The notes beneath the pieces are model-generated. The model was given only the letters and a program-made list of their open reading frames with translations, searched no databases and had not been told where the DNA came from. A program made the position numbers and the translations under genes. Shown one piece after another: positions 17,934-63,257 of a DNA stretch of 64,000 bases; position 1 is the first letter of the stretch; each line of letters begins with the position of its first letter. Origin of the DNA: Takakia lepidozioides (Eukaryota; Plantae; Bryophyta); NCBI GenBank assembly GCA_030704615.1, contig CM060732.1, positions 47,306,001 through 47,370,000 of the forward strand. Reading direction: 5' to 3'.

Positions 17934-19412
17934 GGGTAAACAAGTTCACGGTGGACCTCAACAAGCCAAGTGTTTTCTAGGTTAGACTTCAAACCTTAAA
18001 TTGCAGGCCCGTTCACTTCTCGCCGCCAGTGTCAGTTGATAGTAGCAAGGCTGAGGATGTATTCATGATTTATACACAGGCACGGATAGCTGAAGGACTA
18101 GGGATAGAGGTCTAGATTCATCCAAGAGGGCCGGATTTCGAACACAAGATTACTTCTGATTCCATGTGGATCAATAGCTACAAGAAATCTGAGTCACTAC
18201 AGCAAATGGGGGGGGTTTGCGACGCTAGCCGCGCCCCCACGCCGAGCGTGGCACCGAGCGTGCGACGCCAACCCCGCGGAGCGTGTTTGCGACGCCGGCC
18301 GTCGCAGCCAAATCCCGCGGGACGCCACCTCGCGCCGGGCCAGACGGCGACGCCTGGCCGTCGCACGGGCAGATGAAGGGCAAAAGGCAGCCCTTCCGTG
18401 CGACGCCCAAGCGTCGCCCCCCAGCGAAGGCAAAAGGCAGCCCTTTCTGGCGACGGCCGGTCGTCGCACGCCAAAAAAAAAAACCCTTTCTTGCCATTTT
18501 TTCATCGCAGCCTTTTCTTGCGACGCTAGGCCGTCGCATGGTGGCATGAAGGGCAAAAGGCCCTTGCGACGGCCGGGCGTCGCAAACTGCCCGGCTGCCC
18601 TATTCTTGCAAAACAAAAAAACAGGTCACAGTTTGCGACGGCTGGCCATCGCCGTTTCATTACAGCAAATGGGGGGGGTTTTACGACGCCAGCCGCGCCC
18701 CCACGCCCCACGCAGCGCCAAGCGTGCGACGCCAACCCCGCGGAGCGTAGTTGCGACGTCGGGCCGTTGTAGTCAAACCCCGCGGGAGTGAAACCTGTCG
18801 CCGGGGCCAAGCGGCGACGCCTGGCCGTCACACGGAGTGATGAAGGGAAAATGGCAGCCCTTCTGTGCGACGCCCAAGCGTCGCCCCCCAGCGAAGGGCA
18901 GAAGGCAGCCCTTTCTGGCAACAGCCCGTCGTCGCATGCCAGAAAAAAAAAAAAAAAAAAACCATTTCTTGTCTTTTCTTTGATTGCAGCCTTTTCTTGC
19001 GACGCCCGGCCGTCGCATGGTGGCATGAAGGGCAAAAGGCCCCTGCGACGGCCGGGCGTCGCAAACTGCCCGGCTGCCCTATTCTTTCAAAACAAAAACA
19101 CATGTCACATTTTGCGACGGCTGGCCATCGCCGTTTGCGACCCCCGGCCTCATAAATCCATTCAAAAAACAGGTCGCAGTTGGTGACGGTTGGCCGTCGC
19201 CGTTTGCGACCCCCGGCTCATAAATCCAAGAAAACGCGTCGTAGTTTGCGACGCGTGGGGGTCGCAGGCGGCGACGGGGTTAGGGCCATTGAGGGTTCTT
19301 AGTTTTTGTTTTTTCATATGGTACTGGGGTAGGGTGTTTGTTTTTCTTTATGGTTTAGCTTGTTGTTGTGGACCTTCTTGTAGATTGTGACATTCATTTT
19401 GACAATTCTCTT

Positions 19413-23990: not shown

Positions 23991-24275
23991 TGGTGGATCT
24001 ATCTACTTAATGTGGTGGAAAACAAGCCAGAGTTACTAAGAACTAAGAATGGATCCCCGTACGAGGGTTTGGAAGCGTGCTTCATGAATGTCCAGATTTC
24101 TGTACTAAACCCTGAATCCGGGGAATTTCAATTTCAGAAGTATGATAAGAGAAGACTCTTACCTTTCTCTTACACCCAATACATCCAGTTCCTCTCTAAT
24201 AGACCCGTGAATCAATCCTACAATGTAGTGATTTCACAAGTTTTCCAATTCTGTACATTTCCAGCAGTGTTAATC
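23991..24275 (+). mobile_element. Penelope-like element RT thumb / C-terminal fragment
   Basis: WWIY...FMNVQI...FQFQKYDKRRLLPFSYTQY...SNRP...YNVVISQV resembles the post-catalytic region of PLE RTs (YDKR, SN.P, ISQ). Confidence 0.65.
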
Positions 24276-24279
24276 TGAC

Positions 24280-25098
24280 TTGGAAGGAATGTTGTTTGCT
24301 CATACACACCCTTGGGAAGAATGGCCACCAACTTGTCCCATATGCTCTTTCGAGTGAAGGATGTCGGGAAGTAGGGGGTGCAAGAGTTTGCCAATTCGCT
24401 CAGTGCCAACCTCCTGCGCAAGTCGGAGGCAAAGGCAGACAGAACCTGGTATAGGCTGAGCATGGACGCCATGGTGGACTACATATTTCGGGTAAAGCTC
24501 CTCACTGTTTTGTTGAGCTAATGTGTCTCTCCTCCCCCAATAGAAGAAAAAGTGTTGAGCATGATCTCTAATCTTATGTGCGCATTCTTGACAGACGAAA
24601 ATTCAGTAGGATTTGGCACATGCGCGGAGGTTCTACATGGAGTCAGAGGAGAAGAATCTAACCCTCCCGGCACTCGAATCGTATCTCAAAACTGCGGAGG
24701 CCAGGGCCCGCATAAAGTACAAGTCGCGGATGGTAAAGTACGTGGCCATAGCTAATCCCGCCCTTGGTGCCGACTTTCTGGTGGAGGTGGGGAAGCACTA
24801 CTCCTGCGCTCTGAAGCCCACGATGACATTGGAGAAGCTCCATCGTCTAGCCACATCCTGTGTGGATGCAACAGAAAATGTGATACATTCTTAACCAAAT
24901 TGTGGTGGCAACAACTCGTTTTTGTGGTGTTTGGCGCTTACGAATATGCTGGGTGGTTGGACAGACCCGGTGGCTCCAAATCTGGAATGGTTCCCAAAGT
25001 ACAAGGGACATGTGGAGCTTCCCCAAACCGAACAAACTGTCTGACCCTACATTCGACATGTGGATGAACCGCATGACATGGTGGTTTCACGTACTTCC
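24280..25098 (+). other. Unidentified spliced gene fragment (cargo)
   Basis: Exon-like blocks separated by a GTAAAG...TTGACAG intron (about 24492-24594). ORF 24613-24894 reads ARRFYMESEEKNLTLPALESYLKTAEARARIKYK. Confidence 0.3.
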
Positions 25099-26096
25099 CC
25101 ACGCTTCGTTACTGCTGCACCTGTCTGCATTAGGATTGAGAAATAGCATTGCATTTCCAATGTTAAGCCAGCATATGTCATCGATATAACGGAAAGCATG
25201 CTGAAATTTTGGCATCAATTGAAATTGACCAAGGGCAGCCAGTCTTAAGATGAACTTTAAGTTCGTATGAAAGGAAATAAGTGTTACACCATAAAGGTGA
25301 ACACGAGAACCCCATGGGGATACCTGAGACTTGACGCCAAACACGGTCACCCAATGCTACGAAACAATGACACATCAGCCATTTGTGGAGCTGAAGCAAC
25401 CTGGCTTCATGAAGCTCGATCCAAGTACCTGTTTTGGGGGAAGAAGTGCTCCACTTGCACTTCCCGAAGGTCCCATTCTTTGTTTGGACCCAAAGGGCAT
25501 GGCGTGACCGGGGGTGATCCGTATGATGTTGCTGGAAGGCCAATTTAATCACATGCTCAATGGCATCATCTAAGTTATCTTCACCTGTTAAGGGAATATT
25601 TTCATAGCATTGTGTGATGTTCGCCACAAAAACATCATGGATTTTTGTAGGAAGATTTAAAGTGAAATCTGTAATGTTGTCAATAATCCAGTACATGGCA
25701 GTAGACACTTTGAATAATTGTTTGTAAGTGTTTAACCGTGCTCCGGCCCATTCCTTGATTAAAGGTAATAGGAACATGGTGGCACATGTAAGGAGGCTGG
25801 CGATTTCACTGAATACGCAATTGTGGGCATTTGTAATCCACCTATACTTTTTTTTGTGTAGTTTGTATATTCCCATCATGTAGGGAAGACTACAAAAAGT
25901 AACGGGGATTTCAGGTATCAAATCATGCACTTCACTAAAGAGGCTTTCCAAAACAGAGTCTAGTGATGACCATACCTCATCTTGAAGACATGGTCTAAAA
26001 TCCTTACCCATTAAGCGGTGATAGGCTTGGGTTCTGATGTGCTTCACACATAGAAAACAAACATTGTTGTTAGCCTTATCAAGACCAAACAAGAGG
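25099..26096 (-). mobile_element. Penelope-like element reverse transcriptase fragment
   Basis: Motifs DKANNN, LPYMMGIYKLHK, R.I, RQVSGIPMGFSCSPLWCN.Y..YE and, after a frameshift, FRYIDDI are characteristic of PLE RTs. Confidence 0.8.
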
Positions 26097-26988
26097 CTAT
26101 GAAGAAGCCAGCCTTCGAACTCGCATTGAGGTGGTTCCCTTTGCACATCAAGTGGGCTGATCAACATTTTGGCGCGAAGCGAGCGTATGCCCGTGAGTTA
26201 GACCGCCGGTTTCCGGGCAATTGGGACACAAGGGTGATGGAGATGGTGGGGCGAAACTTGAAGGACAGGAGATACCGTGCCAGACAGATCATTCAGAGGG
26301 CAATGGAAAAGGGGGCCATACCCAAACCACCTTATGGAATTACACAGGTTGGCAAATCCTGAATCATGTCACCTTCCATTTGTCGCATGTGCATTAATGA
26401 GGTGGATTTGATGCAACGTATGTGTGTAATTCACTAATTGTTTGGGGGGGGGGGAGGGTACATAGGTATCGTGGGATGCACTCATTGCGGGAGAGACTGA
26501 TGCCGCAAACAAGGCCAAATTTGACCGGGCACGCGAAGCAACAACAGTCTGCCTTGACAAGCACGAATCCACACACAAGTGGAGCGCCGGCGGATCCAAG
26601 GGTTTTATCTTGCGATTTGTAAGTTGTACTTCCCTAAGGATTTTGTTATGTCTTCTTTCTGGCTCAATCATCGCGAAGAACTAACTTTAATTTGTGGCAT
26701 GTGTAGCAACGCGCGTTTGAGAGGAAGCCATCTCCGGTAGAGTACAACTACGCCAAGGAGCATGGTTGGCAATCCCTCATGAAGAACATGACCAACACAA
26801 CGGGGATGAGTGCACTACAGGGCAGTAGTATGGATGAGGTCGAGGGTCATGCCCAAGGATTGGATGAGAGCTCCGTGGGACTTAGAGGAACGCCGCCTCA
26901 TTTAGGTGCTCTGGCAAAGGGCGCGGAGTCATCAGGCTCATCGGATAGCTCTGAGTCCTCCACTGAGGATGAGGATGAGGATGAGTAG
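26097..26988 (+). pseudogene. 3' exons of a CACTA TnpA/ORF2-like gene in the nested element
   Basis: Spliced exons (...ELDRRFPG...VGRNLKDRRYRAR...PPYGITQ|VSWDALIA...KAKFDRAREA...HKWSAGG) with an acidic tail, adjacent to the right subterminal region. An inverted homolog lies at 56895-57725. Confidence 0.55.
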
Positions 26989-28452
26989 TCCTAGTCCATG
27001 TAGGTCCCAGGGTCAGTCTACTGAACCCTTGTGAGCTTCTCAGCTCATGTCTTGTAAATATATTTCCATCTTTCCATCTTCCATCTTATTCATGTGTCGC
27101 ACCGTCCTCACCCTCAATTCATGTTTGCTCAATTGTGTACCTGCTAACTCATAGAAATGGAACTGTAAGTTCTCCCATCCCCAAATACAAAACCAGGAAA
27201 GAAACAACCCAATTCACCCCCAAAATGAACCCCCAAACCCCCCCCCCCCTCCCCACCAGGCTGCCCTCACGACTGCAACACGTCGCCAACGGCGACGTGT
27301 TTTTTGGGCGGGGGTCGCAAGAAGCGACGGTCAGGCGTCGCAAACCCCATTTGCGGGCAGCAACGCCCGACACCCCCTGCGACGTGCTTTTTTGGTCCGG
27401 GGGTCGCAACCCGTGACGCCCTAGTGTCGCGGAGACAGCCACCCTGCCTGCGCCACTTTTTTATAAAAGAAATTAAACCTAAAATGCAACGCCGGAGTGT
27501 CGCAACAACCCACGCCCAGGCGTGGCGGAGACCGACTCCAGCTGTTTTGTGCCACGCCCAATAGTCGCTGGCAGCGACGCACGGGCGTCGCTTGGCATAC
27601 CACCCGGCTGACTCCCGGGCAGGTTAGAAAAAAAAAGGGGATGCGACGCCACGCCGGCGCCCCACCAACGACGTCGGCTGGAGAGCAGCGACGACAAGAC
27701 GTCGCTGGAAGAGGCTCCTGCCATCGGCGCGGACGGCCTGAAAAACCGACGTCCGGCAGTTGCGGGAGTTGGGGCGGGGGTTCGCGACCCCCATACGTCG
27801 TATTTTTGCGACGTCATTTTGGCGACGCCCTTGCGACTGCAGGGCGATGGCCGGGTGTCGCAAATTCTGCGCCTCCCGCGTGCCCGAAAAGGGCATTTTC
27901 CCGACGCTGCGGCGTGGCCGCGGTGTGGCGCGGGCGTCACAAAGCCCCATTTTCCTGTAGTGTTTGTGACCCCAGGCCTCATAAATCCATTCAAAAAAAA
28001 CATGTCGCAGTTGGCGACGGTTGGCCGTCGCCGTTTGCGACCCCCGGCCTCATAAATCCTAAAAACCGCGTCGCAGGTGGCGACGCGTGGGGGTCGCAGG
28101 CAGCAACGGCAGGGCTTTCTAGGTTTAGGTTTAGGGCCTTTGGGGGTTCTTAGTTTTTTTTTTTTTTCATATTGTACTTGGGTAGGGTGTTTGTTTTTCT
28201 TTATGGTTTAGCTTGTTGTTGTGGACCTTCTTGTAGATTGTGACATTCATTTTGATAATTCTCTTGATACCACATCTATATGTGTTGCTCCAACATACTC
28301 ATTGTCTCTGCCTTCTTTCTTGAAAGACTATCAGCCACATCCATATTTGATCAATCATAGAAATAAAGTACAATATGCATGTATATGTACAATCAATCGA
28401 AGGGATAGGTCCAGTTCGGTGCGAGAATTGTTATGTAGCTTTGATTTTGTGT

Positions 28453-35706: not shown

Positions 35707-36228
35707 ATTTGACGACGTGTTTTTTTCAATTTTTTATCTGGGGGTTGCACCCCGCGACGGAAAGCCGTCGGGGGGGGGGGGGGGGTGTTTTTATTTATTT
35801 ATGGGGCCGAGGGTCGCAAGCAACGACGGCCGGCCGTCGTAAATATCATTTTTACATTTCAAAAAAAAGGCGGGGCGCAGGCGTGCGACGGCCGGGCGTC
35901 GCACGTAGGCGCCGCGCCTTTTTTTTTTCCCTAAGTGCTTGAATAATCTCTTTCCCCTCCCGTTTTCGTTTGTTCTTTGGGAGAGAGGTAGTTCAGAGAG
36001 TGGGGTTTAGGGTGGAGGAGAAACGCACCTGCTGCTGAGCCCGAGGTGGTCGCAAGCCCCAAGGAGTTTGTCCCAATGCCACTCCAACGCCCAAGGTAAG
36101 CACCGCCTCCTCCCTCACTTTCTCTCTTGCTTTCTTGCCCTAAGCACGGGCTAATGTCTCTCTCCCCTGTGTGGTAGGAACGCCGCGCAGAGGCGCAACC
36201 TAAACGAGCTGAAGAGAGAGAGAGAGCC

Positions 36229-36800: not shown

Positions 36801-36819
36801 AAAGAGAGCAACACAGAAG

Positions 36820-39492: not shown

Positions 39493-39499
39493 GCTTGGG

Positions 39500-46440: not shown

Positions 46441-47928
46441 ATAGCTGAAGGAGCAGGGATAGAGTGTGGGTCCAGATTCATCTAAGAGGGCCGGATTTCC
46501 GACGGAGTTAGCACTTGTGGGTTATGTTGGTATCTCCCAGAAGTGCATTCTGGGTTTTAACAAGGTATAATTTTGCTTGTTCATATTACACGTCTGTGCC
46601 TACTTTTGTCAAGAGGTTGTAGAGGACACTTTGTTGCCTCTTAATCGTAGCTCATTGTACTGCAGAATCGCGGTGGTGAGATCTCTCGATGCCTGCGAAC
46701 CAATGATTTGCAGGGGTTCCGAAAGTATGAAAGTATTAAGAAGACATTGTTGCATGAGTTGGTAATTTGATTCTCCCGGGCTTGGATACTTGCTAGTTGT
46801 TTGATGAGTGCCATTGACAATATTATAGTTTTGGCGATAATTAGATCAAATCCTTGAGGGATTGAATCTACATTTTTGCATGTAGTGCTTAGCAATATCG
46901 CGCTTGGAACAATGAAGTATATTTTGGGAATATATTTAGGCAGACTTGTTTGAACACCATGTCACTGTCTGATGTATGAACATCTTTCGAAGGTGAAATG
47001 TCTTCTGAGGTTGTGTTGTGGTGTTTCTATGGATGGCATGTCTGATTGTAGGACCGTGTCTTTCATATTGTATCATATTGTTGCTTATGCTAGTCTATGC
47101 AACAGGGTTGGTGGTAGAATCTTTCTTTGCAACTACGGGATGGGGGGTCGATTTTTTGGTCATTGGAAGATTAATGCATGCTCTATTTCCCTAAAAAGGG
47201 GGGGGGGTGTCTCTTTGTATAGAGGGCCTGTCCTCTTTGCCAATCGATGTGCTTATGAGAGCTCCACATGGTTTGTTTAATTTAAATTAAATATTATTTA
47301 ATAAATTATATGACCTATACTTGTCAGTCACACCTGCTCCAACAAGACCACGTGTAGTGTTGTAGTGATATAGTCATACCCATAGTTGTGTACTACTCCA
47401 CTGCACCATCAGGCAACCATCAGGCAATGATCTCACATGTCACGCAGATGCCTCTCCATGTAGATGCTACATGTCACATCCGGGGGATCACACGTGTCAT
47501 GGAGATGCCTGCATCTCCATGTAGGCGCTCTGCTGTAGTGATGTAGTTGTAACTGCAGTCATAACATTGAGTCGTGTACCAAACCCTACATCAGTATGCG
47601 TCGATGGGCAAGTGCCACGTCCTCAGCGACGACCATGACTTCGCATTTATCACTCTGTAGTGATGGTAGAACTGACATAGTTTTTTTCACTGCAAAGTGA
47701 TGTAATCATAAAAGCACTTATCATTGCAAATGCAGTGATATCCGTAGTCATAAAAATGTTAATGTGTACTAGTGACCATAAATTACGCATGCTTAGTCAA
47801 GAGTCTTCCTTCTATATAAACAAATTCACTAATCGTAAGTAGAAATATGGTTTTTGAAATCACATCAACGAGTATAGAGGAGGAAGAAGATTTTTGCTGA
47901 AGCAAGGGTAATTTATAATGCTACTTAA

Positions 47929-48022
47929 CCCTTAAGGGCCCGCCATTGGACAAATTTCAGCCCCCAGAAAATTAGTAACCTATGGTGAGTAAATTGAGGC
48001 TACACACCGAAACGGCCCTTAA
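47929..48022. mobile_element. piggyBac-type MITE (about 97 bp; last 3 bp and TTAA displaced to 62513-62519)
   Basis: TTAA|CCCTTAAGGGCC ... GGCCCTTAA, completed by GGG|TTAA at 62513-62519, gives a perfect 12-bp TIR pair. Confidence 0.75.
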
Positions 48023-48365
48023 CCCCTAAACGACGAGAGCTATTTTTGGACAAAAGCTGGGTTCACCCTGACAGGAAAGGCTGTATCTGCCTACCCCCAT
48101 CCATGTATGGATGAACCGTTGAAACTTGTCTTTATCTAGTACATGCACAAGCATCCCAAATCCCAGCAAATTTGACCGTTCCATTTGGGATATTACAGCA
48201 AAAAGTGAGGGCCATTTTGTACAAAAATCCAAAAAGTGTCCCAAAACTGCACTTTGACCAAGCTTGTAGGCAATGTTGCAAAATTTTCCAGGGCAAATGC
48301 CCTCCATATTCATTTACCTCCTCACATCCCCAGGCACTGTCAAAATTTCAGGACAATCCGACAAG

Positions 48366-48397
<32 letters not shown>

Positions 48398-51219
48398 TTT
48401 TGCTTTGTATATGAATGGGGGTAGGCCTACAATTGAGAGTTTCCAAAGTATATCATGGAGGTCCCATGCTCACTAGAAATTGTGGGTCAAATCTAAATTG
48501 CAACGGTCAATCTATGCAGTGGCATCTTTCAAAGCACCCTGCCCAAAAACTAGCATGTGGATCAAAATTGCCCCTCAAATGGAGCTTTCAATGACTTTTC
48601 CGGCTGAAGTCCAAGTCAGGATTATGGCAGCCGGAATTGCATGTGATTCAGGCAACGTTTTCCAGGCCCATGTCGTTCTCTCCCACATTTTCACAGGGCC
48701 ATCTCATTCCAACCTTGCCGATGGACGGCCCCCTGGAATTTTGGCCTGGCCGCTCATGCACCTGAGTGCAACTGCCACTCAACTACATGCTTCATTGTCT
48801 TGGGACTGCTTCAACTACCACCTCCCCATGAACTACACATGCGCAAGAAGACCGCCAATACACCCACGCGACCCTTACTATGAACTGAGGGGGAATTGAA
48901 CCCCCTAATTTGCCCTCATCTGCAGACAGTCCCCCCCAAAGCAACACACACACACACCCACACACTCTCGTGAGCCTGGGTGAAAGCAAGCTACGGTGGC
49001 TAGAAAAAGTCCACTGTGTGGCATACACAAGAAGTCCCAAGGTTTTTTAGAGTTTTGATTTGATGATTATGGAAAAAATGTAGTCGCTAGATTCATCCAT
49101 GTTGAAAGATATGAACCATCTAAAATTGACAGTAGCAGACACTATGACATTATTTCTATTTTTCCTAGTACAAGCTATTATTTTTATTTTCTTATTTTAT
49201 TTCCTATATTTAATATTTTTGTTATATCGCATAGTGGGACTCGGCTACTCTTCATCTACATGAAATGTATCTTTTAGTGAAGCAAGTCCATTGTTTTACT
49301 TGTTTCCGTGCATTCATGTACTTTGGCAAAAATCAGTTTTTCGAACTCACAATGATATATAGAAATAAGATATTTTATTATTATTATTATTATTTAGGAC
49401 TTTAGTATCTTAAAGAGTAGAGCAATACTAATATGAGTTCCTTTTATCATATTTATTTTCTATAGTGAGTGCAAAAAATCCATAAGAAGTCTTTTTATGG
49501 ATTGTGACACTGCGTATGCAATTTTCTAAAGTCCATTACTTCGATTATAGTTTGTAGTAGTTGGAAACATAAGAGTAAGTCCCATTTCATCATTGTAATA
49601 AAACTTTGTCTCTAAGGTACAATTGAATCATTGTTGTGACACAAAATGTAGACACCGTAGTTTGCTTTCACCCGCCTATCCACCATGTCTGAAGACCAGC
49701 GTAGCAGCAAATACCTGCAGATGCGATTCTTTCGGACTACACACACACGCACACACGAGTTTGAGTACCATCCACAAGCATGTCCAAAACCGACAGAGCA
49801 ATTAACAGGCCCAGTTCACCGACCTCGGACGAGATGTGCTTCACGGCAACAAGAACCTATCCATGCTTATGCACGAATCATGCATACACCATTGCCTTGT
49901 TGCTAGTAGCTAACAATGGTCCAACCTAGATTTTTTCTAAGAAACGCCCTACTCAACTTATCACAATGGTTCCTATGCTCAATGACATATGCTACTCCTT
50001 GTAATCCAACAAGCATTCACGTTTTTGCCTCCATTGCCCCACCATTGACTGGGGTCAGAAAAGTATTCATTCCATAGCTTCTCCTCGTCTCTGTTTACTT
50101 GTTTATGGATACTTTCCTGTGTCACATGGGCAGTATCATGTCAAAGTCACTCCAAACTATCAAAGATTCAGTCAACCAGCTGTAGTGTGAATGCAGTGGG
50201 GGCAATTTAGAACTTTAATGTTGATCATTGAGTTGTTTGTATTCAAGAGAGGGACCCAGTACCAGTGTGAAAAGGATTAAGTCGTGCCCAGTGGGTTTTT
50301 CATTCATTGGATAAACGAATTTCTCTCGATGGATGGATGTGTTTTCATTGTCATCGCGGATGCAATATCGGGGAAGCCCTGAGAGTGCTGCGGGCAAGGG
50401 AGTGAGCAGGGGCAGTGTGTAGAAGGTGACTTAAGCACATTATGCTTGTCTTGATTTGCCATGAAGCATGATTAGAAGTAATGAAGGGTGAGGGGAGACA
50501 CATGGGAGGTAGCATTGTAACCTGTGCAGTTGCCAGAAGAGGAGAAGCGGTGCCGTCGTTACTATAATGAGTGATAATTTAGGGCTCGCTGGAAGATAAT
50601 CTTGCGAAGAGGCAGCTTGGTAATGTGTGCTCAGGGTAGGGTAGATGAAGGGAGGCGGTGCAGTGATTGCTCTGGTGCTTTGAGAAATGGGAATTGTTGC
50701 AGGATAGTTCAGCAGGGGGGCATGCTGGAGGATACAACTTGATAATATGTGTTCAATCCAGAAGAGGAGAGGCGTTGCAGTCATTGCTTTGATGTCCAGA
50801 AGTGTGGGAATTGCGGGGAAGCAGCAGCCTGATACCATGTACTGCAGACGGAGAGTATGAAACTTAGGCCTACGGAGAGATGAAGGGAGCAGTAGGGAAG
50901 ACGATTGTAGCTAGGAAGAGGGCGGTGTGCCACAGAAACTTGTGTGGTCAAATTGTGAATATTATCCTAGGGTAAGAGGGCAGTAATGAAGGGAAGGAAG
51001 GAGCTGTTAGCAATGACAGAGTGTCACTGCCAGTAGAAGGGGCAGGTCTTGATGAGCTCTTGAGTTTAGTTTTAATGTAGGATGGGAAACTACGGCAATA
51101 GAACGATCTGTAAGTAAGATCTTTGTTTCAAAGAGCGTCGGTGCATGCAAGTGATAGCAGACACTAGGGCAGCAGCTTCCAAGAAGGGTGCCAATTCGGG
51201 CAGCAGGCCCACCTGTGCT

Positions 51220-51816
51220 GAAAAATGAAAAATGGTGGCGGACATTGCCCTACAGACATGTGTTAAAAAATGAACAATAATGGCGGGCCCTACAGACGTG
51301 CTAAAAAATGAAAAAGAGTGGCGGGAGATTGCCCTACAGACGTGCTAAAAAATGAACAATAATGGCGGGAGATTGCCCTACACACGTGCTAAAAAATGAA
51401 GAATGGTGGCCGGACATTGCCCTACACACGAGCTAAAAAATGATCAATAATGGCGGGACATTGCCCTACAGACATGTGCTAAAAAATGAAAAAGCGTGGC
51501 GGGACATTGCCCTACAGACATGTGCTAAAAAATGAAAAAGAGTGGTGGGACATTGCCCTACAGACGTGCTAAAAAATGAAAAATAATGACGGGACATTGC
51601 CCTACAGACGTGCTAAAAAATGAAAAAGAGTGGCGGGACATTGCCCTACAGACATGTGCTAAAAAATGATAAATATTGGCGAGACATTGCCCTACATACA
51701 TGTGCTAAAAATTGAAGAATGGTAGCCGGACATTGCCCTACATGTGCTAAAAAATAAAGAATGGTGGCAGGAGATTTCCCTACAGACATGTGCTAAAAAA
51801 TGAAAAAGAGTGGCGG
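51220..51816. repeat. Minisatellite, about 13 copies of a 44-46 bp unit
   Basis: Unit GACATTGCCCTACAGAC(AT)GTGCTAAAAAATGAAAAAGAGTGGCGG, followed by a duplicated CCGCGGTCATAGGGGTTA(A) at 51878-51925. Confidence 0.95.
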
Positions 51817-53363
51817 GCCCTTTGGGCTGGACATGCCTTGAACCTTGAAGTGTACGTGAGCACGGCTTGAGCACAACCCGCGGTCATAGGGGTTAAATGA
51901 TTTCAAACCGCGGTCATAGGGGTTACATGTTAACAGGCACGGTGCATATGAGTACCTTCAGATTTATTTTCTCAGTGCGAAATAACTTTTCAAGGGCTTA
52001 AACTGCTAATACCGGACTGAAAACCACGATTTTTGTTTTTCTGGGGTTGACCTGCAATGAATAGTCTTTATAACATCGTAATTGTTCGCATAATGTGAGG
52101 AACCCCACGCCCATAGGGTAACATGTTTATCGTGTATAGGTGTTACTTGTTTCTTAAGTGATGTTGTGAGGGCCTATCTGAGCAGTTAAAAAAAGTTTCG
52201 CAAAGTTTTTAGTTTCTCAATTTTAGTTTCGCTGGAGAATATTCGAATGGCATCTATAGAATATACTGATTATTCCCTTGTGCTCACGTGAGAATGCTCA
52301 CACGCTACCCAACCTCGAAGAAGTGTGCACCAACCCAACTTCATACCTATACCATATGTATAGTCATTGTTTTTGCCCATAATGCGGGTATTGCATGGGT
52401 ATTGCCTCTGTCAATACCAGCCTCTGTAGGGTATTGACCTAGGTATTGGAATTGTCAATACCAAGCGATTCGGTTATTAACCCTAGTATTAGAGCCGATA
52501 CTGCCCCACACGAGGGGCATTACCCTATGTAAAGAACTGCCACAATTTTTTTTATAAAAATTAATGTCCAGTGCATTCTGCATTTCGGAATGCACTCGAG
52601 GGAGCTGATGGGGTGCATTCCGAAATACAGAATGCACCGCGATGAATTCTGCTTTTTAACGGCACAATAAATACAAAGAAATTTTTGGGGCAATGCTTTA
52701 CGCTTAGAAAGGGGTGTCAGAAAATTGTATGACGTATGGGGGGTAACCTCACACGAAGTGTGCGCAAGGAATTCTAGAGAGCTTGACAATGTCATGGAGG
52801 TCCACACATTTGGGCAGTAGATGGCCCATGGTCCGCAAGGGAACTTAATTTTACGAAAAAGTCTGTTGATTGGGAATTGAAACATTTTTATTCTACAAAA
52901 ACATAACGTCGATCAGGGATGGAACCCAGAGTTAATTTTATTGTCTTGATAAAATATAATCTTCTGCTTTGGGATTCATTTGCTTTGGATTGTGCCTACA
53001 AGACTGCACAGTTGGCCAGGAGATGCGTGGAACTTGCCCCTGAGTTAAGCCCCACGATGAGCAGCATAGCAATGACCCTCCAACAATTTTTTGCGAAGTC
53101 TCGGGAATGGGAGGACAAAATGTCAGCATTGAAGGGCTTCATAACCAGTTCAATCCAGGCACGCTGAGATTTCTCCGGTAATTTTTGGAGAGGGAGGGCC
53201 AAACCCGTTCAGCCGTGGTGCCGAACATAGTGCAGTATTGTTGTTCTGACAAGAGAGGGGGGTCTCATTCCTAAATTTCATGCTGCAGAAGCAGCATGGC
53301 ACAACCATCACCGGTATGAGCACAGTATTTGGCTAAAACTGAAACTGAAGGGCAGCTCGTCTA

Positions 53364-54077
53364 TTGACCAAACACCAACAGGGGTATGGGGCAGGAAACA
53401 TTGGGACAATGAGTAGTGATAGGGCTGAAATAGGCATGAAATCCAATCAACAAAACATATTAGTGGGGCTGGTGGATTCAGCAGCTTTGTCTCATGGGTT
53501 GTCCTCTCCTCAGACAACTCTTGCTTTGGACAAAAAGTTTCCGTCAGTTGGTCATGGTGTAGAAAACAATGCAGCGATGAGTATAAGCTACAGGGCTAAA
53601 CAACTCATCAAATCCAATCAACTGTCTCAATCAGGGAGACTGGTAGATGTAGCAGATTTGTCTCGTGGATTGCCTTCTCTTCAGACAACTCTACATTTCA
53701 ACAAAGACTTTCCATCATCTATGCTTGGCGCAAATGGAAATGCAACAATCAAATCAAATCAATTTTTGCAATTAGCAAGACTGATGGATGCAGCAGCTTC
53801 ATCTTGCGGGTTGCCCTCTCTTCAGACAGCTCTACACTTGAACAAAAAAAATCCGTCAACTGTGAACGGGACAGGTGGGAATAATCGCACCCAAAATGAA
53901 AAGATAATCAATTACAATGAACCATCACAATCGATGAGGTTGGTGGACACAGCAGCTTCATCCCGTGTGTGGCCCTCTCTTCAGGCAGCTCTACATGTGA
54001 ACAGAAACTTTCAATCAGAGTTTAAACTCAGGGTGGGGAAGCCTACCTTTCAACAATACACAGATGCAGGCACCTGA
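53364..54077 (+). CDS. Uncharacterised ORF with four internal 47-57 aa repeats
   Basis: Four copies of KSNQ....RLVD.A..S.GLPSLQT.L..NK.FPS; the 3' end runs into a LINE fragment. Confidence 0.4.
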   Translation: MTKHQQGYGAGNIGTMSSDRAEIGMKSNQQNILVGLVDSAALSHGLSSPQTTLALDKKFPSVGHGVENNAAMSISYRAKQLIKSNQLSQSGRLVDVADLSRGLPSLQTTLHFNKDFPSSMLGANGNATIKSNQFLQLARLMDAAASSCGLPSLQTALHLNKKNPSTVNGTGGNNRTQNEKIINYNEPSQSMRLVDTAASSRVWPSLQAALHVNRNFQSEFKLRVGKPTFQQYTDAGT

Positions 54078-54360
54078 TGACAGTATTTATTTTCTGTTAC
54101 ACTGTCCAAGATATTCTCACCAGAGAGTGACTCTTAAATCAAGAACATCAAGAACATTGTCCCTGCACCTCTGCTCGGCGACTTTGAACTTTTTGAGGCT
54201 GAGCCTAAAGCCGTGGCCCTGTTGGGATCTAATTGTCGGGCAGATCATTGTCGGGCAGGCCACACACATCAGGTTGATGCAACGTGAAGGGCTCTCTAGA
54301 GCTAATTGTCTATACCATGGTAAATCTCACTATCAAAGTGAGCCCCTCACAAATGAACTA
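54020..54360 (+). mobile_element. Diverged LINE ORF2 3' fragment
   Basis: FKLRVGKP...DDSIYFLLHCPRYSHQR...YHGKSHYQSEPLT is homologous to the 40.2-40.8 kb copy. Confidence 0.6.
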
Positions 54361-54893
54361 TCAGGTCCCTTTAGTTCTGCCCAAAGTCGGTGTGGGGTCT
54401 ATGACCACAAGTCTGCAGCAAACAACATCTTATGAGTAAATTCTCTACATATGGTTATGAGGGCAGTGCACTAGCTTGCCTACCAGCTGGGTGTTTTGAG
54501 CATCCACACCTCTGAGCCTGCATGAGTGGAATACTCCTATTCATTTGCTATGATAGTGGGCAGTGTTGGTTGGTCATTCACCAAAAGATGGGAGTTGGTC
54601 ATGGTTGAGGTGCCTGATTTTATCAATTGTGCCGTTGCAGCTACGGCCTTTAGTTGACCATCTATCCATGGAGGTTTCTGGTAGCTATTGATCCACTAGT
54701 TCATATGCTCAATTGCATCTGCTACTCTCTCTAATCCAACAGGCATTCACCTTTTTGCCTCGATTGTCCCACCATTGACTGGGGTCAGAAAAATATCCAT
54801 CCCATATACTCCTACTGGAATACTCCTATATAGCTTCTCCTCGTCTCAGTTACCTGTTTCTAGATACTTTCATGTTGTCAAATTCCACAATGC

Positions 54894-55300
54894 TCAATCA
54901 ATGCTCCCACATTTGGCATACATGTCCACGAGGGTATTGTTCAAAATCACATCTGGTACAATTCCAGCTTTGGTGATGCAACCATACACCTCTTTGCCCT
55001 TTTCCAGGGCTGCCAGGCTTGCACATGCACTGCAAACGCACACAAACGTGTGGTTGGGCTTCACCCCTTCCCCCATCATCTGCTCATGTAGGTCTCCAAA
55101 GCCTCCATCCCACGCCCCTGATGTGCATACCCTGCAAGCATCGTGTTCCACTGCACCACATCTCGTTCAGCCATAGTGTGTTGAACACTCCTTCGCAACC
55201 TCAATGCTCCCACATTTGGCATACATGTCCACCAGAGTCAATGTTCCCTACTCCTTCAGCTATCCATGCCTCTGCACAAAATCATGCATACATCCTTGCC
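54894..55300 (-). pseudogene. PLS-class pentatricopeptide repeat (PPR) gene fragment
   Basis: EQMMGEGVKPNHTFVCVCSACASLAALEKGKEVYGCITKAGIVPDVILNNTLVDMYAKCGSID, plus a second LVDMYAKCGSIE upstream. Contains stops and frameshifts. Confidence 0.85.
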
Positions 55301-55908
55301 TTGCTGCTAGCAGCTGACAGTGACAGCCTAGATTTTTTCTAAGAAACACCCAACTCAACTTATCACACTAGTTACTATGCTCAATTGCATCTGCTACTCT
55401 CTGTAATCCAACAGGCATTCACCTTTTTGCCTCGATTGTCCCACCATTGACTAGGGTCAGAAAAGTATTCATTCCACAGCTTCTCCTCGTCTCTATTACT
55501 TGTTTCTGGATACTTTAATGTTGTCACATTGGCAGTATCATGTCAAAGTCACTCCAAACTATCAAAGACTCACTCAACCAGCTAACTTGCAGAATTCAAC
55601 ATGAAAATTTAGGGCCGATTCTGATAAGAGGGAAACGTATTCATTCCAGAGCTTCTGCTTGTCTCTGTTATCTGCTTTTTGACACTTTTTTGTTGCCACA
55701 TTGGCAGTAACATATCAAAATCACTCCAAAACCACTATAGAACCACCAATGAGCTAACTTGCAGAATTCAACATGAAAATTTAGGGACGACTCTGATAAC
55801 AGGGAAAACCAGGCTGACATGTGTTGAAGAAGGTACCTTCATTAGCAACGTCTTGTTCTATCAATTGTGCTGCTGCCGCTGCTGTTTCCAGTTGACCATC
55901 TACCCACT

Positions 55909-58400
55909 CACTACAAGAAAAGGGGGCCCTTTGTGACGCCTGAGCCACGCCGCAGCGTCGGAAAAACGCCCTTTTCGGGCAGGGGGCAGGCGCAGAATTT
56001 GCGACGCCCGGCCGTCGCCCAACAGTCGCATGGGCGTCGCCAAAATGACGTTGCAAAAATGCGACGTATGGGGGTCGCGAGCCCCCGCCCCAACTCCCGC
56101 GACTGCCGGACGTCGCTTTTCAGGCCGTCCGATCCGATGGCAAGGGCCTCCGTCGAGCGACGTCTCGCCGTCGCAGCCCTCCAGCCGACGGCGTTGGTGG
56201 GGGCGCCGGCGCGGCGTCGCATCCCTTTTTTTTTCTAACATGCCCGGGAGTCCCATCATAAAACCCAAAAACACGTGGCGTAAGCCGGGTGGTACGCCAG
56301 TGCGTCGCTGCAAGCGACTATTGGGCGTGGCAAAAAAAACAGCAGGAGCAGGAGTCGAGCTCCGCCACGCCCGGGCGTGGGTTTTGGCGACGCTTTGTCG
56401 TCGTTTTTGTTTATATATATATATAATTAAAAATGGCGTAGGCAGGGTGGCGGGCTACGCGACGCCAGGGCGTCGCGGCTTGCGACCCCCGGACCAAAAA
56501 AACACGTCGCAGGGGGTGTCGGGGGTTGCCGCCCACAAATAGGATTGGCGACGCCCGACCGTCGCGACATGCGACCCCTGCCCAAACACGTCGCCATTAG
56601 CGACGTCCTGCAGTCGCGAGGGCAGCCTGGTGGGGGGTTGGGGGTTGATTTTGGGGGTGAATTGGGGGTGGTTTTTTGTTTTTTGTCTGGTTTTGTTTTT
56701 GGGGATGGGAGACCTTACAGTTCCATTTCACTGATTTAGCAGGTACACAATTGAGCAAGCATGAATCGAGGGTGAGGACGGTACGACACATGCATAAGAT
56801 GGAAGATGGAAAGATGGAAATATATTTACAGGAAATGAGCTGAAAAGCTCACAAGGGTTCAGTAGGCTGACCCTGGGACCTACATGGACTAGGACTAGTC
56901 ATCTTCATCCTCATCCTCAGTGGAGGACTCAGAGCTATCCGATGAGCCCGATGACTCTGCGCCCTTTGCCAGAGCATCTAAATGAGGCGGCGTTCCCCTA
57001 AGTCCCACGGAGCTCTCATCCAATCCCTGGGCATGACCCTCGACCTCATCCATACTAGTGCCCTGTAGTGCACTCATCCCCTCCGTGTTGGCCATGTTTT
57101 TCATGAGCAATTGCCAACCATGCTCCTTGGCGTAGTTGTACTCTACCGGAGATGGCTTCCTCTCAAATGCGCATTGCTACACATGCCACAAATTAAAGTC
57201 AGTTCTTCGCGATGATGGAGCCAGAAAGAAGACATAACAAAATCCTTAAGGAAGTACGACTTATAAATCGCAAGATAAAACCTTTGGATCCGCCGGCGCC
57301 CCACTTGTGTGTGGATTCGTGCTTGTCAAGGCGGACTGTTGTTGCTTCGCGTGCCCGGTCAAATTTGGCCTTGTTTTTGGCATCAGTCTCTCCCGCAATG
57401 AGTGCATCCCACGATACCTATGCACCACCCCCCCCCCCCCAACAATTAGTGAATTATACACATACGTTGCATCGAATCCACCTCATTAATGCACATGTGA
57501 CAAATGGAAGGTGACATGATTCAGGATTTGCCAACCTGTGTAATTCCATAAGGTGGTTTGGGTATGGCCCCCTTTTCCATTGCCCTCCGAATGATCTGTC
57601 TGGCACGGTACCTCCTGTCCTTCAAGTTTCGCCCCACCATCTCCATCACCCTTGTGTCATTCCAATTGCCCGGAAACCGGCGGTCTAACTCACGGGCATA
57701 CGCCCGCTTCGCGCCAAAGTGTTGATCTCCTCCTCCCCCCCCCCCCCCCCCCCAAATGCGTATCAGGGTAGAAGCCCTCACCCGGCTTGACTTTTTCGAG
57801 GCGCTTCGCTATCTTGGCCACTTCATTGGCCCTCCTCGTCTCCTCCTCCCTCATCGACAACAATGGGCTGGCAATGGAGGCTTTCAAAGGCCCTTGAACC
57901 TGACGTTGGGCCTGGGCAAGTGCAGCCTTTGCTGCGGAGGAAGGGGTCGCTATGGGGGTGACATCCAAAAGGTGCCCATACCGGGCCCCCGAGCGGGTGA
58001 TGTGCTTGCCAAGGTACATTTCACCCGTCTTGGTGGCCGGGGGTGTGCTCAACTGAGCATTCGGCTCAGCAACAACCTCCCGAATAGGTGAGCTGGATGA
58101 GCCGGCTGAGCCGGCCCCTCGCGCATCCAAGATATGGACAAGAGGGGGGGTACTGGCCTCGGGGGGCAGACGAGCCCTCCGGCTGCGGCTGTCAATGGGG
58201 CTGGTTAGCCGTGAGACGCCCTGGCGCGTCACACGTGCTGGCAGAGCAAACGGATTGTCCGCCGCTTTCTTTGGGGCAGGGGACTTCTTCTCTTTCCCCA
58301 AAAGCTGGCACCTGTCATGCAAACCCACAAGTTGGCCTCATTAGGAACATTCCAGATCAAAAACAAAAAAAACCAAGCATGTCGGGGGCTGAGAGCAGCA
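55909..58400 (-). mobile_element. Right end of the outer CACTA element, inverted, with TnpA-like exons
   Basis: TIR CACTACAAGAAAAGGGGG at 55909, preceded by ACT (AGT on the - strand). 55909-57725 is an inverted homolog of 26160-27962. Confidence 0.85.
56895..58311 (-). pseudogene. CACTA TnpA/ORF2-like gene, downstream exons
   Basis: Acceptor GACAG|G at 58312, then CQLLGKEKKSPAPKKAADNPFALPARVTR... An internal deletion with poly-G filler lies near 57730, followed by exons homologous to 26160-26988. Confidence 0.55.
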
Positions 58401-58414
58401 AGTGCTCGGGGTCT

Positions 58415-60736
58415 CGAGAGGGGGCAACAAAGAGAAAAGAAAAAGGTGGGGGGGGGGGGGAAGTGACTGAGCACCACCACCAGCTGCTGAGCACCGCGGG
58501 CTCAGTCACTCCCACACACCACCGCCCCCCCCCCCCCCCCCCATTTTCTTTTTTTTTGGTTTCCTGATCTCTCCCTCTCTCTCCCTCTGTTACCTGGGTC
58601 TATGGAATTGTTATCCCGACTTCCATATTTTTTGTGCTTAAAATATGGGTTGCAGGGAAAACCGGATGAATTTCATCCTGGTTTCATCCATTTTACCTTG
58701 GCACGTATCTGATTTTTCATTACTGCCTACGATTTTTCAGTATAGCCTAACTTGATTTCATCCAGCCTATACCATAGCTGTGATGTGTTGAACCTTGGTG
58801 TAATTTCCCGATTTTTCTCATCCTACCTTGATGGAAATTGGAATCTGTCCGCCGGGTTCAAGGCTATGCTGGATGAAATTCATCCGGACAGTGGATGACT
58901 GTTGTGGCAAGACAAGGTAGGGTCCCTGCGCAACCCTATTTCTGCCTCTTGCGTTGAAGGATCGCGCTATGGCGGCATGGAGGAGGAGAAGGTGCTCGAG
59001 CTGCAGTTACGTTGAGTTGCCGCTCCTCGAGTTGTTTAAAGCCTCTATGAATGCCGCCCCTATTCATTAAGGAGACGGCAATTCAAGTGCTTAGATTCAA
59101 GTGTATTTGACCTCGGTGAGGGCTTCCACTTAATATGCTGATTGCTAAGTGCTGCAGGGTACCATGAGGATTACAGAGGAGTGAAGATGGTGGCTGGCTG
59201 TGGATTCATCTTGAAATCTAAAAAACTAATCTACTCTATGTTTTTCATGATCCTACCTCTATGTTTGATCTGTGAAGGACAATATAGTGCTACTTGTGGT
59301 GGGTAATCCTTTCCAGATTGGTGGAGGGCCCCTGTTTTGCAAGGATGGCTAAGACTGCCTTGCCTTGCTTTGCCTTGCCTTGCCGTGCCGTGCCTTGCCT
59401 TGCCCCCAACCTGTCAGGTTAAGCATAAAGGCGCTACAATGTATTGTTTGCGGCAGCCCTTTGGGTACCTTCCCATGCATTGTTTAACCCCTGCGTATAG
59501 AGGCGCCTGCGGTCGAGGTTGATGCTCCAGGGTGTTCATACAATCCCACCTTTGACGACCGTGGCTGAGTTATGGTGGTTTGTGTGGGACACATACATCA
59601 GTTTTTAGGCCCTGATTTGCTTTGCCTCCGGTCTGTTAGGGTAAACATATAGGTGCTGCAAATTATAGTTTGTTGCAGCCCTTTGGGTACCTTCCCGGAC
59701 AGTGTTTAACCCTGCAATGATGGCGGAGAATATGGTGGCTTGTGAGGGACACACACATCAGTTTTTAGGCCCTCGCTTACTTGGCTTCAGCTTGTTAATA
59801 AACCTGGCAATGATGGCAAAGACCATGGTGGTTCGTGTGGGACACACACATCAGCTTGTAGCCTTTTTTGGCTTTGTCTCCAGCCTCTGAGGTTTAACAT
59901 ACAGGTGCTGAATGTGATGGCTTGTGTGGGACACACACATCAGTTCTTAGGCCTTGTTTAAACCTTTCAATGATGGCTGAGAAGATGGTGACTTGTGTGG
60001 GACACACACATTAATTCTTAGGCCATGGTCTAACTGGCTTTCAACTTGTTATTAAACATGGCAATGATGGCAAAGATTATGGTGGCTTGTGTGGGACACA
60101 CACATCAGTTTTTAGGCCCTGGTCTACTTGGCTTTCAGCTTGTTAATAAACCTGGCAATAATGGCAAAGATTATGATGGTTCGTGTGGGACACACACGTC
60201 ACTTTGTGGGTCCTGTTTTGCTTTGTCTCCAACCTGTTAGGTTAAACATACAGGTGTTGAATATGATGGCTTGTGTGGGACACACACATCAGTTTTTAGG
60301 CCCTGCTTAACCTTACAATGATGGCAAAGATTATGATGGTTTGTGGGACACACACATCAGTTTTTTGGCCGTGGTTTACTTGGCTTTCATCTTGATAATA
60401 AACCTGGCAATGACGACAAAGATTATGGTGGTTTGTGTGGGACACACACATCAATATGGCCAAGTGGCCAAGTGCCCACCATCCCACCCAGACCTTTGAA
60501 TGTATATCCTGATTATGACTGGTGTTCAATCAGTATTTTTACTTACTCTTTGGGTTATGAAGATTACTGACATGAACACATTATTGTGCATGGAGGCAAT
60601 TCTGGATTTTCCAGCTTGATGATTGATGGATGGTGCCAGTGAAAAGTGGCTGATATGTCTGATTATTCTTATTTTTCCTGACAACGACCCTAGGGGTCTT
60701 GTCCTTGTCTTGACATGACAAAAGTATCTTCCCTCT
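58415..60736 (-). repeat. About 2.3-kb repeat, copy B (inverted relative to 36820-39492), including the tandem array at about 59570-60460
   Basis: Reverse-complement identity with copy A. Confidence 0.9.
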
Positions 60737-60864
60737 TTTTTTTGCTGCTCACAAAAATAAACAAACCACAAAGGAGAGAGGGTGCAGAAAAAGTTAAAAA
60801 GATTGTACTCATAAGACGTTGTTTGTTGTAGCCTTGTGGCCATTGACTCCGCGCCCAGTTTGAG

Positions 60865-61630
60865 CGGAAACAAAAGGGACAGAACCTGCTCTCTGTCAGG
60901 GGCTGACGTTGGTAGTAAGACTTACCTTCATATATAGAATTAATCTGGGTTTTCCAGATATCCTCTACAAATCCCTTCACACAAGCATCAATCTGCTGTG
61001 TGTGATTTGCCCAATAACTAGGCCTCAGGAAGGCCTAGGCTTTTGGCTCAATGTTGAGACTTTCAAAGTTGGTAAACAGATGTACAGGCACAATTCCCTT
61101 GATAGATTTGAAGAGAACGTCTCTTTGGTGAGAGAACCCCGGACAGTGTATCAGAAAATGAGTATTGTCTTTAGATTGCCCACACAACGGGCAATTGCAC
61201 TCTCCCTGTCCTCTCTGTTTCTGTTTGTTGTTCAAAGGTAGGCTTCCTGCCCTGAGTTTAAATTTCAGTCTAGTGCCGAGAGTGGGTAGACCCTTGAGGT
61301 CATCCAAGATGTCCTCCCCCATGTCACTGACTGGAAACAAGTTCAGGGAAGTTTTCTGCTCCAGGGCTGTTTATGTCTTTAATTGACAATGGGTCCTTAT
61401 GGGTCCTGTCCATGTCTTGACATGACGTGAATATCTTCCCTCTCCCTCTCTCTTTTTAACTTTTTCTGTAGAGGGGTCAACTCTGAGGTTAAGAAAACCA
61501 TGCTTTGTCGCATTATTAGACCTGCCTTGGAGTACGGATCTGCCATATGGGTTGATAAATCTGAATTAGAGGATGTAGTGTCCAAAGCCATGTCTGTTGC
61601 CATGAGATTGTCTGATGAAAATGAAGTGAT
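60865..61630. mobile_element. LINE fragments: CCHC 3' piece on - (60865-61360) and RT-thumb piece on + (61490-61630)
   Basis: CNCPLCGQSKDNTHFLIHCPG on the - strand; CRIIRPALEYGSAIW fused to DKSELEDVVSKAMSVAMRLS on the + strand. Confidence 0.65.
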
Positions 61631-63257
61631 ACATTCTTATTCTTATATATATCCTTGTCAGTGGAGGTGTTGGTGGCTCCAAGGCATCACACGCCTTGCG
61701 CTTGGGACCCATTTGAACCTACGCCCAAACCCTATCACCCCCCCTATGTAAGACTAATGCAAATGAAGACACAAGGGACACAGCGGAAATGAAGACGACC
61801 GTCAAGGCATAGATGAGAAGCAGCACATGAAAGGAATGCGCTGAAGGTTATTTGAACAGAGGCAGCCAGACATATCCCAAGATAGAGAGAAGCAACAAGC
61901 TTAGGGGACACAACATATATGAAAGAGCCTACGGAACCCGGCCCCCGCTTCTGCGAATTCATTTCTGCACATCTACGCAACCCGCCTGGCACCTGCGCAA
62001 TTCTAGGTTGGGTACCCAGGCATCCAAAGCGCCAAGGCCTTGTGCCAACGAAAAATGAAGGAGGGGGTGGCCATTGCACACACAAAACACAAACAAACGA
62101 GGCTGCTCAATGGAGGTGGCAGGTAGCGCAGGAAGGAGAAGGTGGAGTTTGCAGAACGAGCGCGAAACCCAGCCCTCGGGCAGTGCCATCTTGGCAGCCC
62201 GTGCCTCATCACCCCTGTATGGCCTCCCGCCGCAAAACCCCACCGGCTTCGTCATACGGGCCTGCCACGTCGCCCGTCAACCTGCCGGCGTGCCCCCCTC
62301 CACCAAAAATCCTGCACCCCCCATGCTTCCAAAACTTACTGACGACGGAGAAATTATCTGTTGGGGGCGCCATGAAGTGCTGCGTGTGCAGGACATTGGG
62401 GGCTACAATTTTCATTCAGGCGGTGTCTTCATCGGAGTTCATTCGGCGAAGTTGCGGCTGGATGAAAAACTGAGGCGACACGTTTCGGGTCGCCTCGTCA
62501 TTTAGGGGTTAAGGGTTAATCCCCAATGGCTGCATTAATCAGTTTAGAAAGTGGACTTCTATTAAAGGCTATAATTGTGGTTGCCCAACTCTCCCCCAAA
62601 GATTCCAAATCCCTCATATATTCACATTTAAGTTTGATCCAGATACCCCCTTTATATAGCTTATAGGTTGGTTATAATGGATGACATCCAATATACACCT
62701 ACATATGTCTCATCCTTCTTTCTCCAAAAAGACGCAAGGAAACTCAGTTCTATCCATTGATAATCTCTTCATGATTAGAGCAACAGGTGGTTGCATTGAG
62801 GGATTTACCAGCTCTCGTCCAGTAGTGTGACTGTCAAATATCTGCAGAGGACCTCACCAATAACGCAGGTTTCAACACAATTATCTATGACCTGCAAAGA
62901 GCAATTTGTTGATTGTTGACGGGGACAAGCCTGAAGATAGTCCAGTTCTATCATTCTATACGACCGTTTACTACGTGAGACTGACTTTGACTTCTATACT
63001 GTCTATACCAAGAAATTATTTTACCAAATAGCTCATTATCTATATATGCGGATATTCTAACTTTTGGTGACAATTTTAGTAGACCCATTTATACTATTTT
63101 GATGTATTTTATGATTTTTTTAGGTGAAATTTTGTGTTAACTTATATATATCTAGTTTTAGATTTAAATTTTAGTATGTTAGCTAAAAATTATACATTTG
63201 GTTAAGAACATTTAACTGTATTTCAAAATATAGATATACAATAATTTTCCATTTTAA

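Follow-up and report, generated by a model that had tools for sequence, protein, structure and literature searches.

A 14.5-kb unit with piggyBac-type ends inside a 97-bp miniature element of Takakia lepidozioides, and a CACTA target-site junction within it

A unit of 14.5 kb with piggyBac-type ends lies within a 97-bp miniature inverted-repeat transposable element (MITE) of Takakia lepidozioides (Bryophyta). It was analysed in a stretch of 64,000 nucleotides (assembly GCA_030704615.1, contig CM060732.1, positions 47,306,001 to 47,370,000 of the forward strand), here called the window, from the first letter of which all positions are counted. The interior of the unit, 14,486 bp long, is mainly repeat debris, in which one junction between a chromosomal repeat and a CACTA transposon end appears to have its counterpart outside the unit. 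We lean towards the view that the 14.5 kb are not the product of later nesting only, and that at least this junction (55856-57727) is derived from the chromosome, having been inside the unit at integration or having been copied into it.

Both ends of the unit can be read directly. On the left, TTAA at 48019-48022 is followed by CCCCTAAACGACGAG at 48023-48037; on the right, CTCGTCATTTAGGGG at 62494-62508 is followed by TTAA at 62509-62512. These terminal inverted repeats (TIRs) agree at 14 of 15 bp, take the form CCCC...GGGG and are the sole such pair in the window. When the 19-mer end that includes the TTAA was sought there with up to 3 mismatches, exactly two copies were found, in inverted orientation, where shuffled sequences lead one to expect 0.01. 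Comparison of the two arms of the unit found no sequence common to both past the 15-bp TIRs. The 19-mer also gave two marine matches in JGI metagenome contigs, which have unrelated flanks and were dismissed as chance matches.

Joining 47925-48022 to 62513-62519 gives a TTAA, a 97-bp core and a second TTAA, and the core so restored has a perfect 12-bp TIR (CCCTTAAGGGCC / GGCCCTTAAGGG). The target TTAA of the unit, 48019-48022, forms the last four bases of the left part of the MITE, and a TTAA is present at all four junctions, those of the unit (48019-48022 / 62509-62512) and those of the MITE (47925 / 62516). Because the target CCCTTAAGGG is palindromic, the inverted repeat of the unit appears to extend further than it does and reads 21/22. 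The outer CCCTTAA was considered as the unit's own terminus and rejected, since on the left it is preceded by ACGG, not by TTAA, and since a paralogous end has another flank. We conclude from the sequence that a single integration, at one TTAA within the MITE's right terminal repeat, accounts for both ends of the unit.

Reads were available as Logan contigs from four runs of one sample in one study, which may be the assembly's own data, and were aligned over 46001-52000. In all four runs the left junction is spanned by an error-free contig at single-copy depth (529-530 bp in three runs, 549 bp in the fourth); these contigs run from 47714, 47733 or 47734 to 48262 and take in flank, MITE and TTAA as well as the left end. 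A further single-copy contig, from another locus, first has 33 unrelated letters, ending in ...CTAGTG where the unit has ...GGCCC, and agrees with the unit from precisely 48019 on. A paralogous left end with a different flank exists elsewhere, and since its match begins at exactly 48019, the family terminus is TTAA/CCCC. The first-pass annotation of this DNA had proposed both the imperfect TIR pair and the restoration of the MITE on removal of the unit, and on both points it is borne out; its reservation that the MITE-side flank might be a constant part of the family terminus is answered by the different flank of the paralogous end.

The evidence on how the cargo arrived comes from CACTA ends, of which the window holds three related ones: at 18195, in the element 18658-27962 and at 55909. 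As is characteristic of CACTA (EnSpm) elements, CACTA termini with a 3-bp duplication are present at all three. The element at 18658-27962 (C-n) is nested in the CACTA that begins at 18195 (C-p), and the host sequence GCCATCGCCG-TTT-GYGACCCC continues across it. Pairing of 18195 with 27962 was accordingly rejected, as 27962 belongs to the nested element that starts at 18658, with TTT on both sides. The end at 18195 (E1p) and the end at 55909 (E2) share 87-89% identity with their counterparts in C-n. The CACTA match of E2 stops abruptly at 57727, with no continuation at the protein level. The body of C-p runs towards a degenerate CACTA-like end near 35938, and the flank of that end is not a match.

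The flanks of E1p and E2 complement each other. Both lie against a repeat, S, whose unoccupied copy at 54621-54700 reads AGTTGACCATCTATCC-ATG-GAGGTTTCTGGTAGCTATTGATCCAC. With a slash marking the element boundary, the flank of E2 is ...AGTTGACCATCTACCC-ACT/CACTACAAG and that of E1p, in reverse complement, is CTGTAGTG/ACT-CAGATTTCTTGTAGCTATTGATCCAC, so that the two ends stand beside adjoining halves of S, next to 3-bp duplications, AGT and ACT, that are reverse complements of each other. To the left of 18195 there follow in order AGT, the right half of S in reverse complement, a piece of a second repeat, R, and an open reading frame (ORF) with a PORR domain (Pfam E 7e-27). Each half-motif of S has two copies in the window, one in the unoccupied copy and one beside one CACTA end, where about 0 would be expected by chance, and the only CACTA end in the window whose flank completes the target at 18195 is that at 55909, inside the unit. 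The two junctions have the same orientation and lie 37.7 kb apart, one outside and one inside the unit. After alignment of the flanks, the view of 55909 as an unrelated truncated CACTA copy, suggested by its running in the same direction as 18195, was rejected. The first-pass annotation had called 55909 the right end of the CACTA whose left end is at 18195; target duplication and flank do tie the two together, but ends that run in the same direction are not those of a contiguous element. Judged from these flanks, 18195 and 55909 are most likely the two halves of one CACTA insertion site, as nesting cannot yield halves in the same direction.

Half-sites in the same direction with reverse-complement duplications are the signature of an inversion, which can come about when inverted CACTA copies recombine or when CACTA ends undergo alternative transposition. 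The order of the junctions is interleaved (18195 < 48023 < 55909 < 62508), and an inversion that separated the CACTA halves would therefore also have flipped the left end of the unit and the left part of the MITE. Since the unit ends, the TTAA duplications and the MITE halves stand in perfect insertion configuration, the piggyBac-type event would be later than the inversion; the unit would in that case already have contained the S/CACTA junction, or a copy of the junction would have been written into it.

The sequence of events that we propose would begin with insertion of a CACTA into repeat S, with the duplication ACT, followed by a rearrangement that parted the two halves of this insertion site. 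A unit with piggyBac-type ends that held the S/CACTA junction would then have been integrated by a transposase supplied in trans, in a single event, into the TTAA within the right terminal repeat of the 97-bp piggyBac-type MITE. Instead of being carried along, the S/CACTA junction may have been written into the unit as a copy. Other parts of the interior, such as the 696-bp MITE with its GCCT duplication and the LINE-like pieces (resembling long interspersed nuclear elements), would be ordinary nested repeats. In its full form the proposal, that piggyBac-type ends moved or copied about 14 kb of neighbouring chromosome, including the breakpoint of an earlier CACTA rearrangement, and then entered the terminal TTAA of a related MITE, is tentative, with a chance that we put a little short of even. 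As to the route, it is possible, if rather doubtful, that the unit came as one block from a donor site close by with its cargo already in place, and copying of local DNA into it during repair (Pack-type) is unlikely.

Several observations weigh against chromosome-derived cargo. The inner boundary of the CACTA, at 57727, is not at a TTAA, so that a moved block needs extra deletions. No further copy of the 19-mer end (up to 3 mismatches) occurs in the unit, so that a classic composite of two elements leaves no trace; the inner ends that such a composite would retain are absent, and for the other TTAA/CCC sites inside the unit no partners were found. Repeat S is tied to the very high-copy repeat R, and if CACTA elements prefer that base of S, which is conceivable, the halves would match though nothing links them. 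One copy of the unit was examined, and neither a full second copy nor an empty site nor a donor site was seen. Support from reads is for the left junction. The case rests on one locus and on the assumption that S holds no CACTA hot spot. What the first-pass annotation had offered as a pack-type or composite transposition of a local block is therefore retained in part: the S/CACTA junction ties the interior to the chromosome, but no signature of fused elements is seen, and the 696-bp MITE is a plain nested insertion.

The alternative that fares best is growth in place, in which a small non-autonomous piggyBac-type element entered the MITE and swelled to 14.5 kb by nesting and deletions, with two independent CACTAs inserting at one and the same base in separate S copies. 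No other origin of such units is nearly as common as nesting, and the setting suits growth of this kind: the whole window is repeat-dense, the interior has a clean nested MITE with its own duplication, LINE-like 3' parts and a truncated CACTA, and the 48-52 kb segment consists almost wholly of sequence repeated elsewhere. Growth in place requires, however, that two CACTAs struck S at an identical nucleotide, made identical 3-bp duplications and then each lost the complementary end. The window has one more CACTA insertion that can be dated, and this one chose TTT inside a CACTA, which indicates that the family is not strictly site-specific, and the mismatched flanks of the CACTA from 18195 would be left unexplained. 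We therefore regard growth in place as somewhat unlikely, and prefer a unit with at least one chromosome-derived junction.

The assignment of the ends to piggyBac follows the usual practice for non-autonomous elements of this superfamily, which are classified by TTAA and CCC...GGG termini. The unit integrated at TTAA with a TTAA duplication, and its short TIRs start 5'-CCC and finish GGG-3'; no DDE_Tnp_1_7 transposase domain lies within it, and it is thus non-autonomous. It is improbable that the ends belong to another cut-and-paste superfamily with 4-bp duplications. The unit has no transposase and its assignment is made from ends and duplication alone, as is common for non-autonomous elements, and Sola-type elements also make 4-bp duplications. 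Sola has moreover been reported as active in plants, in a survey of 1007 plant genomes that were screened for piggyBac and in which the recently active clusters reported are of seven other superfamilies (PMC12973397). Against this stand the TTAA at every one of the four junctions and the CCC...GGG termini, a piggyBac hallmark, together with the report in 2025 of piggyBac transposases in land plants (PMC13461360).

That the two ends come from separate events, either insertion of two family members in the terminal TTAA of two CCCTTAA-ended MITEs with deletion of the internal ends or a misassembly, is very improbable: CCCTTAA-type termini beside TTAA are frequent (three in the window), the right side shows just 3 bp and the TTAA of the MITE, and the G/C runs at 48370, 57729 and 58440-58542 are possible spots of assembly error, but two insertions at equivalent sites and two deletions would be required, the unit has neither a second MITE body nor an internal end, the GG at 48014-48015 completes the MITE's 12-bp TIR, read contigs support the left junction, and a chance or misassembled join would not give a perfect TIR, a target-site duplication and restoration of the MITE.

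Table 1. Features of the unit, of its insertion site and of the CACTA elements to its left, in window positions.
Feature	Positions	Strand	Remarks
Right half of repeat S (reverse complement, 18166-18191), AGT (18192-18194) and CACTA end E1p from 18195, the 463-bp left end of C-p	18166..18657	+	Outside the unit
Complete 9.3-kb CACTA C-n, nested in C-p	18658..27962	+	Outside the unit; TTT at 18655-18657 and 27963-27965; reference for E2
Left TTAA duplication and first 94 bp of the 97-bp piggyBac-type MITE	47925..48022	+	TIR CCCTTAAGGGCC
Left TIR of the unit, CCCCTAAACGACGAG	48023..48037	+	End search; contig from another locus starting its match at 48019
Left arm, low-copy	48023..48977	+	2-6x single-copy depth; G28 run at 48370-48397
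Nested 696-bp MITE, 25-bp TIR GGGTGAAAGCAAGCTACGGTGGCTA	48978..49673		Duplication GCCT (48974-48977 / 49674-49677); moderately repeated in the genome
Repeat R copy, very high-copy, shortened at 50181 relative to other copies	49853..50181	+	Contig depth to ~10^4x single copy; loose ends at 50181
44-bp minisatellite, 13.6 copies	51214..51817		
237-aa ORF over degenerate in-frame tandem repeats of ~141-171 bp	53364..54077	+	No family match
LINE-like ORF-tail fragment	54037..54444	+	Inverted relative to 60800-61247, 77-85% identity
Unoccupied copy of repeat S	54621..54700	+	Reference for the CACTA target site
PLS-type PPR fragment, ~130 aa	~54860..55260	-	Broken by stops and frameshifts
Left half of repeat S	55856..55908	+	Finishes in the 3-bp CACTA duplication ACT, 55906-55908
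CACTA end fragment E2, 1.8 kb	55909..57727	+	Inside the unit; 89% identical to the right end of C-n; cut at 57727
Fragment W, beginning with a C run	57728..58465	+	Ends with the GA-rich/poly-G tail and hairpin of LINE-like family 3' ends
LINE-like 3' part: zinc-knuckle ORF tail (60866-61633), long 3' region with 94-bp minisatellite (58568-60750), tail	58527..61633	-	
Right arm	61634..62493	+	Contains a 184-aa ORF
Right TIR of the unit, CCCCTAAATGACGAG read on the minus strand	62494..62508	-	End search
Right TTAA duplication of the unit, GGG (final 3 bases of the MITE) and the MITE's own right TTAA	62509..62519	+	

The remaining content of the unit is listed in Table 1. Neither transposase nor reverse transcriptase nor integrase domains were found by Pfam among 265 stop-to-stop ORFs of at least 33 aa in 47900-62600, in agreement with the first-pass statement that the unit lacks a piggyBac transposase, and no tRNA or Rfam family was found in 47000-63500. 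Contig depth rises from 2-6x single copy at 48001-48800 through 27-62x at 49001-49600 to as much as ~10^4x at 50001-200, and by the read contigs nearly the entire stretch of 48-52 kb has further copies in other parts of the genome. The arms, 48023-48977 and 61634-62508, have no further copy within the window, and a word search of a protein collection gave no relatives for the 184-aa ORF of the right arm. The 696-bp MITE at 48978-49673, flanked by a target-site duplication of its own, is nested in the ordinary way. Repeat R is present again within the unit at 54691-55807; its summed contig depth reaches ~10^3-10^4x single copy, it recurs beside repeat S, and it may be satellite-like or SINE-like (resembling short interspersed nuclear elements). 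A 60-bp piece outside the unit, at 46440-46499, has a contig depth similar to that of R.

The coding and repetitive items that the first-pass annotation had listed inside the unit are present, though mostly in reduced form. The minisatellite stands as described. The PPR fragments come down to a single broken piece of 0.4 kb within repeats, which sits between the R pieces 54691-54806 and 55260-55807 and has a Pfam PPR_2 score under threshold (E 8.8e-5). The repeat-protein ORF is an open frame of 237 aa on in-frame tandem repeats, but its codon-position signal is absent (differences 17/19/26). LINE-like parts are seen too, but with weak support: the two LINE-like ORF tails in the unit give a zf-RVT match at E 0.069.

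The longer LINE-like 3' part (58527-61633, 3.1 kb) matches 36530-40248 in reverse complement, collinearly and at 85-97.5% identity. A local segmental duplication of 58416-61633 and 36355-42961 was considered and rejected; these are two copies of the LINE-like 3' part, and their ORF-tail pieces differ. At 58416-58571 two LINE-like 3' tails (GA-rich, with G13 and C18 runs) are in facing orientation on either side of a common palindrome, GTGACTGAGC...GCTCAGTCAC, forming a hairpin of ~150 bp, and a tail with such a hairpin also terminates the LINE-like copies at 40170-40250 and 42880-42960. Fragment W was examined as a continuation of the CACTA end and rejected, as the CACTA reference has no DNA or protein match past 57727. 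Long homopolymers lie at or near element boundaries (G28 at 48370-48397, ~C19 at 57729-57753 and ~G16 at 35770-35786) and may be weak points in assembly or replication.

Outside the unit, the body of C-p resumes at 27963 (96-97.5% identical to 19406-21903), is interrupted at 28266-30677 by a 2.4-kb insertion and stops close to the ~35938 terminus. The nested CACTA contains an ORF of 329 aa (25178-26167, minus strand) with no Pfam match, the terminal motif of which, GIPMGFSCSPLW, recalls by eye reverse-transcriptase-like proteins. The ORF that adjoins the repeat/CACTA junction to the left of C-p (17436-17930) has a partial PORR domain, covering profile positions 95-172 of 326, and may represent only part of a gene. 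At 63254-64000, 735 bp beyond the MITE site on its right, lies a third piggyBac-type end (TTAA/CCCTTAAGTTCCCAAGCG), for which the window contains no partner; this element probably extends past the edge of the stretch. If the unit is taken out, less than 1 kb separates this third element from the MITE. Further to the left, a Ty1/copia integrase ORF (6513-7517, minus strand; rve, E 1e-9) has its best public relatives in plants, at no more than 47% identity. Together with the PORR domain and the PPR fragment, these relatives point to a plant genome.

Comparison with known systems places the unit closest to the non-autonomous elements and MITEs of the piggyBac superfamily, typified by piggyBac of Trichoplusia ni, with which it shares the TTAA duplication, short CCC...GGG TIRs, the lack of similarity past the TIRs and a presumed dependence on transposase in trans. 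It differs from the usual non-autonomous copies in being far larger, at 14.5 kb, in coming from a bryophyte, in having no transposase remnant and in holding what is probably a junction of the neighbouring chromosome. In this last respect it resembles Pack-TYPE elements, in that it is a non-autonomous TIR element with probably chromosome-derived DNA between its ends, with TIRs and a target duplication and no transposase. Plant elements for which Pack-TYPE capture is on record are MULE, CACTA, hAT, PIF and Mariner, piggyBac not being among them, and the model of acquisition, by tandem or nearby insertions and then re-mobilisation (PMC8903248), resembles the composite route suggested in the first-pass annotation. 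Singletons were discarded in that work as possible false positives (PMC8903248). Whereas Pack-TYPE elements form families and carry captured coding DNA, the unit is known from a single copy and has no internal ends, its one gene piece is the 0.4-kb broken PPR within repeats, its cargo is mostly transposon debris, and its clearest chromosome-derived piece, the junction of repeat S with the CACTA end, is non-coding.

The proposed rearrangement has a parallel of a different kind in maize. There, Ac/Ds and CACTA ends, different or broken, can act together to move or invert large blocks of chromosome, and such macro- or alternative transposition leaves the target duplication reverse-complemented at two distant junctions. 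The same pattern is seen here in the ACT and AGT at 55906 and 18192. The maize cases, however, involve hAT or CACTA elements and were shown genetically, whereas here the CACTA signature is read from sequence alone, and the second step would have been carried out by piggyBac-type ends. Natural piggyBac ends around a very large foreign interior are known from Teratorn of medaka, a ~180-kb fusion of piggyBac with a herpesvirus (PMC10175614), and size is therefore no barrier for units with piggyBac ends. Teratorn differs from the unit in having its own transposase, a viral genome and many copies; the unit encodes nothing recognisable.

The value of piggyBac as an engineering tool derives from its ability to move large cargo precisely, and natural piggyBac ends with host chromosome DNA between them are scarce. 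Should the link between 55909 and 18195 reflect a target hot spot, the locus would be an ordinary swollen non-autonomous element. If a block was indeed moved or captured, the unit would be a naturally occurring case of Pack-type capture or macro-transposition for the piggyBac superfamily. A real link would also give the locus a dated order, from CACTA insertion through rearrangement to piggyBac-type integration, and would mean that piggyBac-type elements are able to reshuffle chromosome segments in an early-diverging plant lineage.

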